Part shown: in pieces, positions 2,466 to 61,386 of the stretch
How the letters are laid out: every line of letters starts with the position of its first letter
Numbering within the stretch: the first letter of the stretch is position 1
From: Pelomyxa schiedti
Taxonomy: Eukaryota > Protista > Evosea
Direction: 5' to 3'
DNA length: 64,000 nt
Assembly: GCA_020536535.1 (NCBI GenBank)
Contig: JAHLWZ010000068.1
Location: forward strand, 16,196-80,195
The notes under the pieces: generated by a model
The model's input: only the letters and a program-made list of their open reading frames with translations
The model's database searches: none
Told to the model about the DNA's origin: nothing
Program-made: the position numbers and the translations under genes

Positions 2466-4425
2466 TTAGAGTAGCAAACAACCTTTTGCTTGCAAAGCAG
2501 GGCCATATGAGGCAAGCTTAAAAGCAGCCTCAAACAGGGAATAAACCCCTTGTCTTGTAAGTGCACTGCACTCCATGTAGAGTAGGTTGCCCATTTGCAT
2601 TGCCGTTTTGATTCCATCTTGGTATGTTAGAATGGGTTTGCCAGGTTGCCTCAGGTCTGTTTTTGCAGCAGCAACAATGCATTGGGCATTGGGGCAATAG
2701 TGCTGAACCTCTGGGTACCATTTTTCTGCTACATTGTAATAGGATGTTTTGTCATCCACGGAAAATATAAGAATAAACACATCAGTATCTATGTAGCTCA
2801 ATGGCCTCTGGTTTACAATTCGTGGTGAGTAGGAAATTTTTGTAACACACAAAATGCAAACCAGGCGATCAAACTTTGTTTGTCCTGAAGTGTCCCATAA
2901 TTGGCACATCACAACCTTCCCGTCAATAATCCTTTTCTCGCTGTAGTTGTCAAAAACCTGTGGGATATTTTTTCTTTTTTTTTCCTGGTTAAGCATATAC
3001 TACTTACAGTTGGGACATATTCGGAAGGGAATGTTTTCGTTGTATAAGAAATTAGCAGACAGGTCTTGCCACATGCATCATCACCAACAACCACAACTTT
3101 GGCAGTGGATTTGAAGGGTCTTTCAGCCGAATTCTTAAGCTTAATCAAATGTGAGGATATAAAAAGCCATGTGCGGATAATATACTGGATGAGTAAGCAA
3201 CCAGAGTGCAATATCCGGATTGCCAGAGGCAGTTTCCATTGCACTTTTGATTTTCAATTCATCATTTTGACCTGCTGCAAAAATGTACGGTGCTTGATCA
3301 GGGAACAGCTCCGTGAGTGCATGTCTGAAGCTCCCTGTTGAGGCTTCATTTACAAGTTGCACTGCTGGTGATGTGATGTTGTTTGCTACAGCATTTATAG
3401 CACGCAGCGCAGATATGAGAGACACGTGAGATTCTGCGGGCCCGGCACTGTGGCTGCGGGGTGGTCTTGGTCCCCTGGAATCTAGGCGTCCTCGTTCTTT
3501 CCTTGTCTCGGACTGCACTGACTCCGGGGGTGGAACTGCAGGGTGTGTCGACGAGGTGGTGGTAGTAACCTCATCACTGATAACGGATACAGAAATTGTG
3601 GGAGTTGGGTTAGTAGCAATGAAACGAGGGCTGTGCTGCAGTGCAGAAGATGCAGTTGTATCAGAGATGTCTGGCGATTGGATAGTTGCAGTACATTCTA
3701 CGCCAGTTGTTGAAAGTGATGGGGCTAATGGATTTGATGGTGCCGGACTTGGAGGTGAAACGGCAGGTGGAAGAATAGGCTCCGGATGTGTGGGAGTTTG
3801 TTCACTTTCTGTTTGGTTAAGGGCACTTATTGCACCCCTCAATTTGACAACAGTTCCTAGTCCAAGGCCCACCGCAAATAGATCCTTATCTCTCAGCCCA
3901 GAAACTACAGCCATAGTGTCAAACAGTTCTCTCTCAAAAACGGTCCAAACTTCTGGCATCCCCAAAGCTGCCAACCACTCATCAACAACCTATTTCTTAT
4001 TGTAAAACAGGGGAGAATGAGAGTAAACGAAACATGTCTACAACCAACAACACAAAATATAAAAAAGAAACCAAGGAAAACTTTTGCATTCCCAAAAAAA
4101 AGCTGGGGGAAAAAAAAAAAAAAAACCAAGAGAAAAAACAAAAACCCCATGACCAACCACACACCATAGTATTGATATCTGCAGCACCAAAAACATATAC
4201 AGGACGAGGAACCCTGGCCCTGAGGTCACCGAGCGCTGTCCTCAGCCTCACCACGTGCCCCCTTTTGACGTCCGGGTACATTGCCAGCCGTTCCAGGTCC
4301 TCGTCACTAATCCCGTGTGCCACGTGCCGCAGGTCGCAGGATCGAAACCCGGCCGACTCAAACGTCGGCCACAGCTCGCCGCACCCAATGTCCGTCAGCC
4401 ATTCCCCAACTGATTCGACCGCCAT
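2466..4425 (-). CDS. Rho/Rac-family GTPase fused to two N-terminal SAM-like domains, a Ser/Pro/Thr linker and a UBA-like segment; C-terminal CAAX (CLLL)
   Basis: GTPase motifs [35 protein letters not shown] and ECSAL. Phase-0 GT-AG introns join DINTM|[10 protein letters not shown] and LLTHP|[10 protein letters not shown] in frame. SAM-like segments are [23 protein letters not shown] and [27 protein letters not shown]. Confidence 0.85.
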
Positions 4426-6346: not shown

Positions 6347-9300
6347 TTAGGGGTTTTGTTTTGGGTGTTTCTTGTTTAGACGGAGGAGGGCTTGCTGCAG
6401 TTGGTGTATTTCTTCTTGTTGCTGTGCTATTGTCTGTTGCATTGATTGGATATCTGGAAGCAGTGGAGGGGAAGGTGAAGGTGCTGATGATGCAGAGGTG
6501 ATGAGTGGTTGTGAGAATGGCTGAGGAACACTGAGTGTAACCACCGTGCCACAGCACGGGCATGTGCAAGAACACCACAGCGATGTTGTTGGTGTTGCCG
6601 CTGGTCCCTGTGATGGTGATTGTGAAGGCGGTGGTGAGGGCGATGAGAATGCCGGGAGTGCCGGGAGTGTGAGGACTGGAGTGGGTGATTTGAGCGGGGG
6701 GCTTGTGCATTTCTGTGCGAGGGATGTGGTGGTGGGAGGAGGGAGCACCGGGATGGATGGAATTGTGGGTGACAGGTCGGTGAGTGAAAGCGACGGCGAG
6801 GACGAGCTGAGGCCTGGGGACTGGGAGAGGGAGAATAGTACCGGCCTTTTGGTTGGTGATACAACCTAATAGATAGATTGTTTGATTGTTTGTAAGAAAA
6901 GATAGTAAGTGATGGAGGCTCACGTTGAGAAAGACTTCTGAAGTAGTTAGAATATCCATTGAAGGTCTGAGGTCCGGATCTTTTGAGAGCGTCCACATCA
7001 CAAGGGTACTCTATTTGAATTGTTTGTTTTGCGTCACCAGATTAAAGGTAATTACCTCTGATGGGAAATTGGACGAAAAAAGAGGAGGTATTCTCCCGGA
7101 TAAAGCATCACTCACCAGATGAGCTCGCTCGGCAAATGTATCGTAGGGGTTATACATCTCGAATAATATCATGCCCAGGCTTCAGCTCTGTAAGTTTCAA
7201 AGCTGCTTATAAGTTTGAATGTGGTGCGTTTTCACACCTAAAAACATCTGTTTTGTTGGTGTAGATTGAGTTCTTTTGCTGCTCTGGTGAACAATAAGGC
7301 CATGTGCCTACACCTTTTGTGTGTCCCACAGCTCCACTCCCAGAACTCCCTGAAGTGAATCAGAGAAGAAAAAAAATAGATGAACCACTACTTATATCCA
7401 ACTCGCAGGTAAATTCTGTTGCAAGACCAAAGTCAACCTTTAAAAAATTAAGGGGAGGGAAGAGATAAGTAAAAACTAACAATTTTGGCATTCCCCCTGT
7501 GTAGAATGATATTGGCTGGCTTCAAGTCTCTATGAATAATTCCTGAAACTTCTTAAATTGCAATTGACCTACAAGGTACTGACCTTGAGAATGTATATGC
7601 TTTAAACCTAGTGATACTTGCTCGAAAACCTTGGCTCATATTAAGGAAACACTTGAAGGCAAGTAAAAACGAGAATTACTTGGGAATTGAATTGAGGATT
7701 AAGCTTTCGGCCAGGAGATGACAAAATTTGGCTGAGAGTATTTCCAATACAAAGTTGCATTTGAATATATAGTACATATATGACACGTTTATTGATAGTT
7801 GCACTACTAGTGCTGGTGTTACTAGTTGCTGATGAATCTCTCGTCTTCCGTTTCTTCCATAGAATCAATTGATTTTGGGAGTGTGCTTCTGTAAATATTA
7901 TACGTCACCTTCTTGAAGTATTGCATTAATCAATAATACCTACTGATTTGGTTTTGTTTCTAGTAGTGTCATTCTCCCATTCATTGAAACTTGTATCATT
8001 AGTATCAATATCTTGGAACACAGCCCTCCGACTTGGGTGAGGGGATCCTTCCTCACTTTCTGGCAAAGTACCCAATTCTGAATCTGGTTGGTATTGATTA
8101 TCTGTCTCCTGTTCCTCCTCTTCCTCTCCCTCTCCCTCGCCCTCGCCCTCGCCCTCGTCCTCGTCTTCATCCTCATCCTCATCCTCATCCTCGCCCGCTT
8201 CTCCTTCATTGGTTGTGTTGTCTACATCCTGGCACCCACTACAAATATCACCTTCGGAAGCAACGGGTACACCATCGTCTGTTGCCTCAGTCAGGTTATT
8301 TTCAGATTCTTCACCAACACCTAGAGGATCGTTATCCAAGTAGATTAAAAAAAAGTACAGACTCTCATTCCCAAGATCAGATTTAACACTTACAGGATCG
8401 CAGGTTGTTGTTTTTGTAGAAGGTAAACCATCTGTGAGTTCTTCAACACACTCGGTGCCACTGTCGACAATCGAGGAGGAGTACCTAATTTTTTCAGTGC
8501 TACTTGCAAGAAATTAGAATTACCTTTTTTTAGCCAAAACATCAGTACACATCACTTCAAACCATGAGGCATAATACCTCACAACGTTTGGGTGATCAAG
8601 CCGAGCGAGAGTTCTAACTTCTCTCAGAATCTAGAGAATCCAGAAAGTAAGAAATAGACTTTTTGTGCTTGTTTGCGCACCTTTGAGAGAATTCGGGGCA
8701 AGTCCCCTCTTGGTAAGAACTTGATTTGTTTGCAAGCATATTCAACACCATCAAGCCTGTGCCTTACCTTGCTTGCATTTGAAAAGGACTAATTTTCATT
8801 TGTTTACCTTGAAAACTAAACTTGGTCAAATTGAAACCACCCAACTCCAAAAACGGAACCTGCACCAAATCCCCCCTGGCCCAGACAGTCTTGTTGCATA
8901 AATTCTCGAGTGTACCTCCCCTGTTCCACCATGTCGTGCCTGAATTGATTACATTTAAGTTCGTTTGGCTTGTTTTTGAAAGCTCATACAATTGAAAATA
9001 TCTTGCATCATCACACAATGACCAAGAGGTGGTCGTCCTCTTCCAATTCTCACAGAAGCTGCCACAATCAGGCTACAATGGTATAAGTAAAACCCTTAAT
9101 TAAGAATAACACAACCAGTGACGTTGTTGGTGTTCCAGGAGTTAAAGTTGGTGAATCAAGTTGTAGCATATTCGAAACACCCTCAATGAAGTCAGTATGA
9201 AGCCTATGCAAGTGCGGTAATATTTGGAACAATTCAGTATTCACCACAATCTAAAAAAAAGTTAATGCACCTAAATTGGGAAACCAGGAATCACAAACTC

Positions 9301-47323: not shown

Positions 47324-48571
47324 ATGCCATGTGTGTGCGATCCTGAGATACAAGACGGCCACGAGTACGTGAAGTGGGTTGCGACCGTATTTCAGACTTG
47401 CGTGTACAGCCCCACCGATGTGGCCGCTTTTATGCTCGGACTCGTCAACATCGGATTTTGGTTGTTTGCTCAGGTTGGTTCCGGTCTGTTTCTTTCTTTC
47501 TTTGTTTGTTTGTTTGTTTCTTCATTTTATTTGTGACGTTAGTGGCTTCTTTCTTCCACCCAAAAAAAAAAAAAAAAAGCAAGCGCAGTATATTGTTCCA
47601 TCAATTCTTACCAATTTTAGATACCGCAAGTGGTGGCCACTTGCAAGGTTGGAAGTGCTGAAGCATTGTCATTCTTGTTTGTCTTCACTTGGCTCACTGG
47701 AGATATCACAAACCTACTTGGATGCGTGATGACTTACCAGCTTCCTACTCAAACATACACTGCAGTTTACTTCTGCATCGTGGATGGCGTCATGATGTTT
47801 CAGTGGGTTCTATTCAGCTGCCGTGCCCGGCGGCGAAACAAATACCGCATCGTTAAAGATGTTGAGCTCTCTGTAACTCCAACTATAAACGAAGAAACAC
47901 ATCCTCCTGCACCAGCAACATCGAATACTGCACTATTGTGTATACTACTCTTCATTACACTAATACGCATGTCAACTACCATGCTGGGGGGACTCTCTGG
48001 TGAAAGAACAGAGGTGACAACCGTAAATTCTGTTCCAATCAATCAACATCATCAAAGAGTTCTTCTACAGTATGATGAAGACTTACACATAGCCCTATCA
48101 CCGGCCGCAATAGATAGTATTTTCCAGTATACTAGTTGGACTTCCAGTCAACTGGATTCCATGTCAAGTTCCTCGAGTAGCAATACCACAGAAACACAAA
48201 GGATTTGCCCGAAGCCCCCAGACGAGATGCCGCTTGCAAGAAGAATTGTAGGAGACATCTGTGCGTGGCTCTCTGGCCTACTGTATTTCTTTGGCAGAAT
48301 TCCGCAAGTATATCACAACTACAAGCGGCGATCAGTCAAAGACCTGTCTTGGTTCATGTTTGCTTGTGCATTCATGGGCAATACATGTTACGGTCTCAGC
48401 ATTGTACTGATGAAGCTGGACTGGTCAGACCCAGAGTTCTGGGAGAATGTGTTCCCTTATATTCTTGGCAGCTGGTTCACCATGATTTGGCCACTGTTAG
48501 TCCTTGTCCAGTATTTCTACTATGGGTTCTGGACACAAAGAAAGCGCTACAATGCACTGGCAGACCCCTAA
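47324..48571 (+). CDS. PQ-loop lysosomal/vacuolar amino acid transporter (PQLC2/Ypq-like)
   Basis: Two PQ motifs, WLFAQ|IPQV..LSFLFVFTWLTGDITNLLG and YFFGRIPQVYHNYKRRSVKDLS, with about 7 hydrophobic segments. Confidence 0.88.
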
Positions 48572-51146: not shown

Positions 51147-51358
51147 AAAAAAAAAAAATAGAAGGACAAAGAGGAGAGGGCAGAATCGAGGCTTGATTTA
51201 CGGATCGAAGCACCGGAACCTGAAACCGGCCCATTAGACCACTCTGGCACATGGCATTCCTGCCATGGAGGGGTTCGAACCCTCGAGCTTGTGGTGCCCG
51301 TATTATGAGAATGGGCCCACATCCTCCAAGCTTGTAACCAACATGTGAGCCTCTCCCC
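51147..51358 (-). ncRNA. predicted ~210-nt structured Pol III-type transcript enclosing the permuted tRNA fold
   Basis: GGGGAGAGG (51358-51350) can pair with CCTCTCCTC (51179-51171). There is a hairpin GGCTCACAT/ATGTGGGCC and a helix TACGGG/TCCGTA next to the variable stem. T12 lies at 51158-51147. Confidence 0.5.
51206..51290 (-). tRNA. circularly permuted tRNA-Leu(CAG) gene or tRNA mimic (3' half upstream of 5' half, junction in the variable arm)
   Basis: The minus strand reads AAGC TC GAGGG-TTCGAAC-CCCTC CATGGCA GGAA TGCCATG TG CCAG-AGTGGTCTA-ATGG G CCGGT-TTCAGGT-TCCGG T GCTT CG. This gives a perfect T-arm, a 7-bp acceptor stem, a Leu-type D-loop, a CAG anticodon (51222-51220) with G37, and a variable stem GCTT/AAGC. 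Confidence 0.8.
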
Positions 51359-51490
51359 AAGAGTTCATAGACATCAACAGCCATTAAAAGCTCGAAAAAA
51401 ACTACCTGACCAGCAGTTATGGGTTTCCGTTCTTCCCGGTTGAAAATTTTCAAAGACACACTTGTTATTTATTTCCTTTTCTTGCAGCAC

Positions 51491-61236: not shown

Positions 61237-61320
61237 AAAAAAAATAGAAGAACAAAGAAGAGGAGAGGGCAGAATAGAGGCTGTATTTACGGAAGCCAGC
61301 CCATTAGAGGTATGGAGGGA
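61237..61320 (-). repeat. internally deleted second copy of the 51.2-kb permuted-tRNA element
   Basis: + strand aaaatagaagaacaaagaagaggagagggcagaatagaggctgtatttacgga versus aaaatagaaggacaaagaggagagggcagaatcgaggcttgatttacgga at 51155-51204, plus shared gcccattaga and atggaggg. Confidence 0.85.
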
Positions 61321-61386
61321 CAAGATTCAGGTTTTTCTTTTTATTTTTTTTAAAAAGGAACACCGCAATGAGGCAGTGATTCCAAG

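Follow-up and report, generated by a model that had tools for sequence, protein, structure and literature searches.

We analysed a 64,000-nucleotide stretch of the Pelomyxa schiedti genome (positions 16,196 to 80,195 of contig JAHLWZ010000068.1, assembly GCA_020536535.1; hereafter the window), whose minus strand encodes, at 51290-51208, a leucine-type transfer RNA (tRNA) core in permuted order. Read along that strand, the core runs from the 3' strand of the variable stem through the T arm and the acceptor 3' strand into a GGAA loop, and on through the acceptor 5' strand, the D arm and the anticodon arm to the 5' strand of the variable stem; the opening in the variable arm and the GGAA-sealed acceptor agree with the original prediction for this locus. 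The 4-bp variable stem extends through a 3x6 internal loop into a 6-bp helix formed between a leader, ca. 68 nt of which lie ahead of the variable stem, and a trailer of ca. 49 nt. From sequence comparison, we see about an even chance that the locus encodes a tRNA-mimic domain carried on this long leader-trailer stem, its closing loop possibly opened by RNase P or tRNase Z, as in the YrlA RNA of Mycobacterium smegmatis.

When the two halves were swapped in silico, ARAGORN called tRNA-Leu(cag) with every variable-loop filler tried, and across a grid of junctions Leu(cag) was by far the dominant call (382 solutions). ARAGORN is permissive given good acceptor, T and D parts, returning many minor calls at arbitrary junctions, and for this reason only its dominant call is used here. 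In the native order it found no tRNA in the whole window, and Rfam gave no RF00005 match at the gathering score or at E-values up to 10, with chance-level matches only. The Leu(cag) call therefore appears only after re-ordering, as expected of the permuted half order first proposed. The tRNA and stem elements lie where the original prediction had placed them; the features of the locus, from promoter to terminator, are given below together with a decayed copy elsewhere in the window.

51417-51424, minus strand: Dictyostelium upstream sequence element (DUSE)-like promoter element ACCCATAA, matching [AT]CCCA[AT]AA (PMC3188802), 58 nt ahead of the distal 5' strand
51392-51401, minus strand: T-rich box TTTTTTTCGA, its end 33 nt ahead of 51358; kept in a paralog on contig C644
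51388-51382, minus strand: TTTTAAT, just after the T-rich box
51350-51358, minus strand: GGGGAGAGG, predicted from the promoter spacing to start the transcript and to supply the 5' side of the distal closing helix; pairs with 51179-51171 in the minimum-energy fold
51303-51349, minus strand: leader body, in which the block CTCACATGTTGG and the palindrome TGGGCCCA stand; the C644 paralog is 97% identical over 64 nt
51297-51302, minus strand: leader strand of the proximal helix, TACGGG, read from the sequence as pairing with TCCGTA at 51204-51199 (five Watson-Crick pairs and one G.U)
51291-51296, minus strand: CACCAC, leader side of the 3x6 internal loop, read from the sequence
51261-51290, minus strand: tRNA 3' part, comprising AAGC (51290-51287), TC (C48), the T arm GAGGG-TTCGAAC-CCCTC (51284-51268) and the acceptor 3' strand CATGGCA (51267-51261); T stem and T loop fit the tRNA consensus
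51257-51260, minus strand: GGAA loop sealing the 7-bp acceptor stem, its G being position 73
51208-51256, minus strand: tRNA 5' part, comprising the acceptor 5' strand TGCCATG (51256-51250), U8 and G9, the D arm (51247-51231; CCAG-AGTGGTCTA-ATGG, with C10-G25), G26, the anticodon arm CCGGT-TTCAGGT-TCCGG (51229-51213; CAG, G37 and a U31.U39 mismatch), U44 and the variable-stem 5' strand GCTT (51211-51208)
51199-51207, minus strand: first part of the trailer, with the CGA bulge and the proximal-helix strand TCCGTA (51204-51199), read from the sequence; the copy at 61 kb still has TCCGTA
51171-51198, minus strand: trailer body with the pyrimidine-rich CCTCTCCTC (51179-51171), 3' side of the distal helix; the copy at 61 kb is 88% identical
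51147-51158, minus strand: T12 run, an RNA polymerase III (Pol III)-type terminator; T runs of 5-12 end every member of the family described below
61237-61372, minus strand: decayed paralog 10 kb away, keeping CCCTCCAT, TCTAATGGGCTGG and the trailer (88%) with a T run

In the re-ordered core a G15-C48 contact is also possible. The minimum-energy fold does not return the cloverleaf (z about -2), which is usual for tRNAs and makes this fold uninformative. The CACC of the leader (within 51291-51296) can pair with GGUG at 51212-51215, formed by the 3' end of the anticodon stem with U44 and G45, and this pairing replaces the cloverleaf in the minimum-energy fold; it could be an alternative conformation or chance.

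Comparison with the ordinary leucine tRNAs of this genome shows how far the element has moved from them. Canonical tRNA-Leu(CAG) is present at at least five distinct loci, alongside TAA, CAA, AAG and TAG genes, and all canonical Leu genes recovered have G1, A73 and a T run within a few bases downstream. The D, anticodon and T loops of the permuted element are identical to those of canonical Leu(CAG), whilst its acceptor, D, anticodon and variable stems all differ and yet still pair, and two of the five T-stem pairs differ in sequence. With stems divergent and loops identical, the element was not made by joining two ordinary copies, and this pattern rules out a tandem pair or a misassembly of ordinary tRNA-Leu genes; that it is no simple tandem pair, as first argued, is also borne out by the lack of a tRNA call in the native order and by the single occurrence of the full 212 nt in the 52-Mb assembly. 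Stem divergence with pairing kept points to long divergence under constraint on the tRNA fold. Among the canonical genes themselves, tRNA-Leu(TAA) and tRNA-Leu(CAA) recur as divergent pairs with ca. 90 nt of shared spacer on several contigs (L046, L060, L070 and others), and there are small repeated clusters of Ser and Leu genes (C237, C913).

The element is one of a family. A covariance model of the T arm, closed acceptor hairpin and D arm, built from this locus and then refined, scored the locus at an E-value of about 1e-12 in the 52-Mb genome and recovered ten more loci with the same layout on other contigs, a census of at least 11 loci that is a lower bound. The other isotypes and the covariation that the original prediction proposed to look for were both found. 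Core alignments were model-based (a MAFFT alignment was structurally wrong) and, being fitted to the model, somewhat favour the structure; across the 11 loci 98.8% of cells are paired, against ~50% in slid controls, with changes on both sides at all seven acceptor pairs, and the observed covariation was reached by none of 500 shuffles. Every member has a 7-bp acceptor stem, closed by a loop of 4 to 14 nt. Once re-ordered, the dominant ARAGORN calls were Ser(gct) for L039, Ser(tga) for L078, an anticodon cta for L035, Leu(cag) for L077, Thr(agt) for L079 and Thr(tgt) for L081. In three of the relatives (L039, L078 and L035) the opening lies in the variable arm, as at the present locus, and between L078 and L035 the 3-bp leader-trailer variable stem changes compensatorily (GAC/GTC vs. 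GTT/AAC) beside a conserved ATTGC/GCAAT helix. Two others, L076 and L037, are opened in the anticodon arm and keep the variable hairpin intact (ATC-TTCG-GAT and ATC-GAAA-GAT); it resembles the canonical Leu(TAA) arm. L076 and L040, which attach near the anticodon stem, have no anticodon loop, and their T arm, acceptor hairpin and D arm are still paired. Conservation extends beyond the core: leader and trailer blocks are conserved among paralogs with diverged acceptor stems, a block GGTGCTC.AATATTG related to the 5' block of the leader occurs in L035, L078 and L039, and C/T-rich ends related to CCTCTCCTC are found in all relatives. A DUSE-like motif lies 53-58 nt ahead of a G-rich start in six members, all six of which fold with paired ends, and in five relatives the G-rich start stands at the promoter spacing of the present locus. 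Tentatively, we suggest that the family may form a parallel, multi-isotype set of sealed permuted tRNAs, driven by promoters of small nuclear RNA (snRNA) type and bearing isotype-true anticodon loops, which would be a new eukaryotic class of tRNA mimic, and of which the present locus would be a variable-arm-attached Leu(CAG) member.

Individual members of the family show further variation. L035 (core G000:C817:82978-83032) is class-II, its best anticodon is CTA, which would read the UAG stop, and its anticodon stem is a weak 3-4 bp; L078, a close paralog, reads Ser-TGA with C33. L077 (core G000:C790:198539-198602) is a second CAG element, with the loop ATCAGGA on an all-A/T stem, G1, G10 and A73, a 14-nt acceptor loop and a trailer of ca. 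150 nt, and forms one subfamily with the Thr-like L079-L081. The latter, an inverted pair (L079/L080, G000:C1130:8273-8332 and 9067-9126) and a third locus (L081, C859:56173-56232), are near-identical, long elements, each with a Thr-like permuted core; the anticodon is AGT or TGT, the loop stays canonical, and TCCCACAA lies 121-124 nt ahead of the T arm. L076 (C967:14079-14133) and L037 (C1289:7837-7892) are paralogs with different stable tetraloops on the variable hairpin, TTCG and GAAA respectively, and the leader of L037 holds TTAAGT, a relic of the Leu(TAA) anticodon loop. L036 (core G000:C1014:6871-6918) is class-I and Ile-TAT-like, opened at ~29/30, with a 9-bp closed hairpin in the acceptor region; ACCCATAA is found 112 nt ahead of its T arm, and a purine-rich leader faces a pyrimidine-rich trailer.

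That the core sits in a larger RNA, as the original prediction held, accords with the promoter found upstream, whose predicted start falls at the distal 5' strand. In Dictyostelium, genes for snRNAs and Class I RNAs, whether Pol II or Pol III transcribes them, have the DUSE ~60 nt ahead of their starts (PMC3188802, PMC7919456). We compared ten U6 snRNA genes of this genome (L082-L091, e.g. G000:C496:28744-29029): all ten have ACCCATAA or TCCCATAA 57-59 nt ahead of U6 position 1, and in eight a T-rich box (TTTTTCGA or TTTTCCT) ends 32-36 nt ahead of the start, so that, judged by motif and spacing, the U6 promoter here is of the Dictyostelium DUSE type, as suits an amoebozoan. A DUSE-like motif occurs within 120 nt upstream in 6 of 100 canonical tRNA genes, and 61-70 nt upstream in 2 of 100. 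At the permuted locus ACCCATAA and the T-rich box stand 58 and 33 nt, respectively, ahead of GGGGAGAGG; because this spacing is that of U6 and a T12 run follows, we infer that the locus is its own transcription unit, starting within a few bases of 51358 and ending at the T12 (51158-51147), with a primary RNA of ca. 205 nt. The nearest recognisable protein-coding neighbour is an open-reading frame with two PQ-loop repeats (membrane transporter family) at 47630-48571 on the plus strand of the window, and the mechanical open-reading frames spanning the element gave no Pfam match.

Two decayed copies of the element were found. The copy on C644 (L002 ~1440-1640; G000:C644:41190-41390) has its own T run and retains the 64 nt of leader noted above, together with the T-rich box and TTTTAAT ahead of the predicted start; the DUSE is lost, 28 nt are deleted from the T loop to the D arm, the anticodon loop is now TTGCCGG and the proximal helix is broken. 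The copy at 61237-61372 is without T loop, acceptor hairpin, anticodon arm and DUSE, and only small remnants of the core remain. Homology of the copies ends at the element borders. As C644 keeps the upstream T-rich box and TTTTAAT, the copies arose as DNA; an origin as short interspersed nuclear elements or retro-copies is unsupported, given the kept upstream sequence and the end of homology at the borders.

Several observations favour a mimic over a working tRNA, the direction in which the original prediction leaned. Position 73 is G here and A in every canonical Leu gene recovered, and across the family it disagrees with the canonical isotype in six of the seven comparable members (G vs. A at the present locus, T vs. 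G in L039, C vs. G in L078, C vs. A in L036 and A vs. T in both L079 and L081, with L077 in agreement at A). Since this disagreement is at about chance level, position 73 looks like an unconstrained loop nucleotide. The U1-A72 and C10-G25 pairs and the U31.U39 mismatch count against a leucine tRNA, and a C at the tenth base of the ARAGORN call was seen in none of the canonical tRNAs examined. At the junction, reading the sequence in every register gives no bulge-helix-bulge (BHB) motif, that is, two 3-nt bulges staggered by a 4-bp helix; the CGA of the trailer directly faces the CACCAC of the leader between the 4-bp and 6-bp helices. With at least five canonical, A73-bearing tRNA-Leu(CAG) genes in the genome, the permuted gene is also dispensable for reading CUG. 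The conserved blocks of leader and trailer point the same way, as do the members whose elbow module is intact although they have no usable anticodon loop. The shortness of the GGAA linker, originally counted towards a mimic, has to be dropped as evidence, because intervening sequences in published permuted genes range from 1 to 74 nt (PMC3978253).

Against a mimic stand, above all, the anticodon loops, which are isotype-perfect: TTCAGGT is the canonical Leu(CAG) loop, and among the relatives Ser-GCT, Ser-TGA and Thr-AGT/TGT loops are seen, each with its matching purine 37. Such loops are not obviously required by a pure shape mimic and fit real decoding tRNAs, and the acceptor stem, exactly 7 bp throughout the family, is well matched to enzymes that measure real tRNAs. 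The genome encodes a splicing endonuclease (two loci) and an RtcB ligase, and published permuted tRNAs share with this locus upstream promoters, T-run terminators and short linkers, of down to 1 nt among the published genes (PMC3978253). The distal closing helix is equivocal: it is plausible, as first proposed, and recurs in relatives, but the duplex energy of the 5' end with the last 32 nt was no better than that of mononucleotide shuffles in any of six members (p 0.14-0.78), and the purine-rich composition of one strand and pyrimidine-rich composition of the other account for most of it. No Y RNA or vault RNA (RF00006) match was obtained from Rfam at E-values up to 10, and Ro60, the partner that the original prediction had proposed to look for, was not found in the genome, whose single TROVE locus is TEP1-like. 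The anticodon loops, the 7-bp acceptor stem and the encoded endonuclease and RtcB also weigh towards the main rival reading, a genuine circularly permuted pre-tRNA, in which leader and trailer would be cut away at the internal loop, RtcB would ligate the remainder to a circle, RNase P and tRNase Z would open the GGAA and CCA would be added, yielding a class-II tRNA that reads CUG and has an undescribed variable-arm junction. The re-ordered cloverleaf is complete, with all tertiary-contact bases, and the locus resembles the published genes in its class-II bias, its DUSE and T-rich box at U6 spacing, its T12 and its linker of 3-4 nt (PMC3978253). We nevertheless consider this route somewhat unlikely, as it has to accommodate the opposed 3x6 loop in place of a BHB or relaxed BHB, the G73, the U1-A72, C10-G25 and U31.U39 pairs, the multi-copy canonical Leu(CAG) genes, a long leader and trailer that are conserved in sequence, and two decayed paralogs.

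A quite unlikely reading is that of a family relic, recently disabled or neutral, which is still tRNA-shaped and no longer used. The decayed copies on C644 and at 61237-61372 do show turnover, U31.U39 weakens the anticodon stem and canonical genes make the locus redundant; however, the promoter elements are intact at exact U6 spacing, the terminator is clean, every other helix is intact and three loops are those of canonical tRNA. Still less probable, in our view, is a two-piece translating tRNA, opened by RNase P and tRNase Z and given CCA without being ligated, its halves held by the acceptor stem and a giant variable arm of leader and trailer. The strict 7-bp acceptor, the complete anticodon arm and the leader-trailer helices would suit such a molecule, and there are precedents in permuted transfer-messenger RNA (tmRNA) genes (PMC3978253) and in M. 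smegmatis YrlA, to which CCA is added after cleavage by RNase P (bioRxiv 10.1101/312249). G73 and the D-stem 12-23 pair match those of the genome's canonical tRNA-Ser(AGA), and G73 might mean charging with serine. Changing A73 to G turns a human tRNA-Leu to serine acceptance. We know, however, of no translating tRNA with a variable-arm stalk of more than 100 nt, and the base at position 73 changes freely among the family members. That the locus is an assembly artefact or resembles a tRNA by chance, for which one could cite the fragmented draft of 5337 contigs, is highly improbable: the same topology, with compensatory changes, recurs at ten further loci on other contigs, the stems are unlike those of every canonical tRNA, and the contig around the element is at least 80 kb long.

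Circularly permuted tRNA genes have been described in Cyanidioschyzon merolae, prasinophytes, the Bigelowiella nucleomorph and Thermofilum pendens (Soma 2007; review PMC3978253). Like the present locus, these have the 3' half before the 5' half on one strand, a short linker between the acceptor ends, an upstream promoter rather than A/B-box order, a T-run terminator, leader-trailer pairing and a preference for class-II tRNAs. Their junctions, in contrast, fall at 15/16, 20/21, 37/38, 50/51 or 59/60 with a BHB or relaxed BHB (PMC3978253), whereas the present junction lies in the variable arm and lacks a BHB; the long conserved leader and trailer, the snRNA-type promoter, G73, the canonical isoacceptor copies and the heterotrophic amoebozoan host set the locus further apart. 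YrlA Y RNAs (bioRxiv 10.1101/312249) are alike in their L-shaped core, their D and T arms with tertiary-contact bases, their loop-closed acceptor and the stem formed from the RNA ends, and the M. smegmatis form, whose acceptor stem is 7 bp, is cleaved by RNase P (bioRxiv 10.1101/312249). YrlA RNAs are attached through the anticodon stem, have no anticodon loop, vary in acceptor length and pair with Ro60/Rsr, whilst the present locus is attached through the variable arm, has a full anticodon arm and an acceptor that is always 7 bp, and neither a Ro60 gene nor a Y RNA match was found.

Other small RNAs share single features with the locus. The DUSE-dependent small RNAs of Dictyostelia, both snRNAs and Class I RNAs (PMC7919456, PMC3188802), have an element ~60 nt upstream, paired ends and a T run, although Class I RNAs are 42-65 nt long, carry an 11-nt motif and have no tRNA-like core. 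Vault RNAs (RF00006) are Pol III transcripts with paired termini and tRNA-type A and B boxes, and a TEP1-like protein and major vault protein are encoded here; vault RNAs are, however, without a full cloverleaf, and the present locus has its B box before its A box. The two-piece tmRNA of permuted genes (PMC3978253) also has a permuted tRNA-like domain, and its product may stay as two base-paired pieces, but it is bacterial, has a tag reading frame and is broken elsewhere.

The TROVE locus (L092, G000:C807:24000-32000) was considered as a Ro60 gene and rejected: its TROVE pieces (~2547-3888) continue in downstream open-reading frames to 7045 with DUF5920, DUF4062, a NACHT-like P-loop and an APAF1_C helical domain, an arrangement of TEP1 type, and an actin gene lies upstream (781-1683). 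Major-vault-protein repeats occur at six loci (C810, C516, C352, C518, C850 and C93), and vault particles are probably made in this organism, to judge from these genes. A link of vaults or TEP1 to this RNA is conceivable; nothing ties them together. Were the locus to encode a mimic, its RNA would take the L-shape of a tRNA raised on a long stalk, and might be read by factors recognising the tRNA elbow and the anticodon loop, without being a leucine donor in translation. Its strictly 7-bp acceptor stem makes it a plausible substrate of RNase P and tRNase Z, and the loop may be opened, which would give a two-piece RNA held by the stalk, as with M. smegmatis YrlA. The TEP1-like TROVE protein and the major-vault-protein gene products are candidate partners only.

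To our knowledge, reports of permuted tRNA genes are confined to a few algae and one archaeon, and Y RNAs that mimic a tRNA with its acceptor stem sealed have been described in bacteria alone. Our literature search returned no paper naming both permuted tRNA and Pelomyxa, no post-2015 report of permuted tRNA outside algae and archaea, and no published eukaryotic example of a tRNA-shaped RNA gene with a sealed acceptor and the back half first. If the locus encodes a permuted pre-tRNA, this type of biogenesis would be extended to a new supergroup and a new junction, without a BHB, implying a different processing route. If it encodes a mimic, it would be a eukaryotic counterpart of the YrlA-type mimics in which the anticodon is retained. 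Either way the family bears on the rearrangement of tRNA genes, on non-translational readers of the elbow and anticodon loop, and on the RNA partners of amoebal TROVE and vault proteins. Should the wider family prove to be a new class of mimics, its members could be anticodon-specific decoys or regulators of tRNA-binding enzymes, or RNA partners of TEP1 and vaults.

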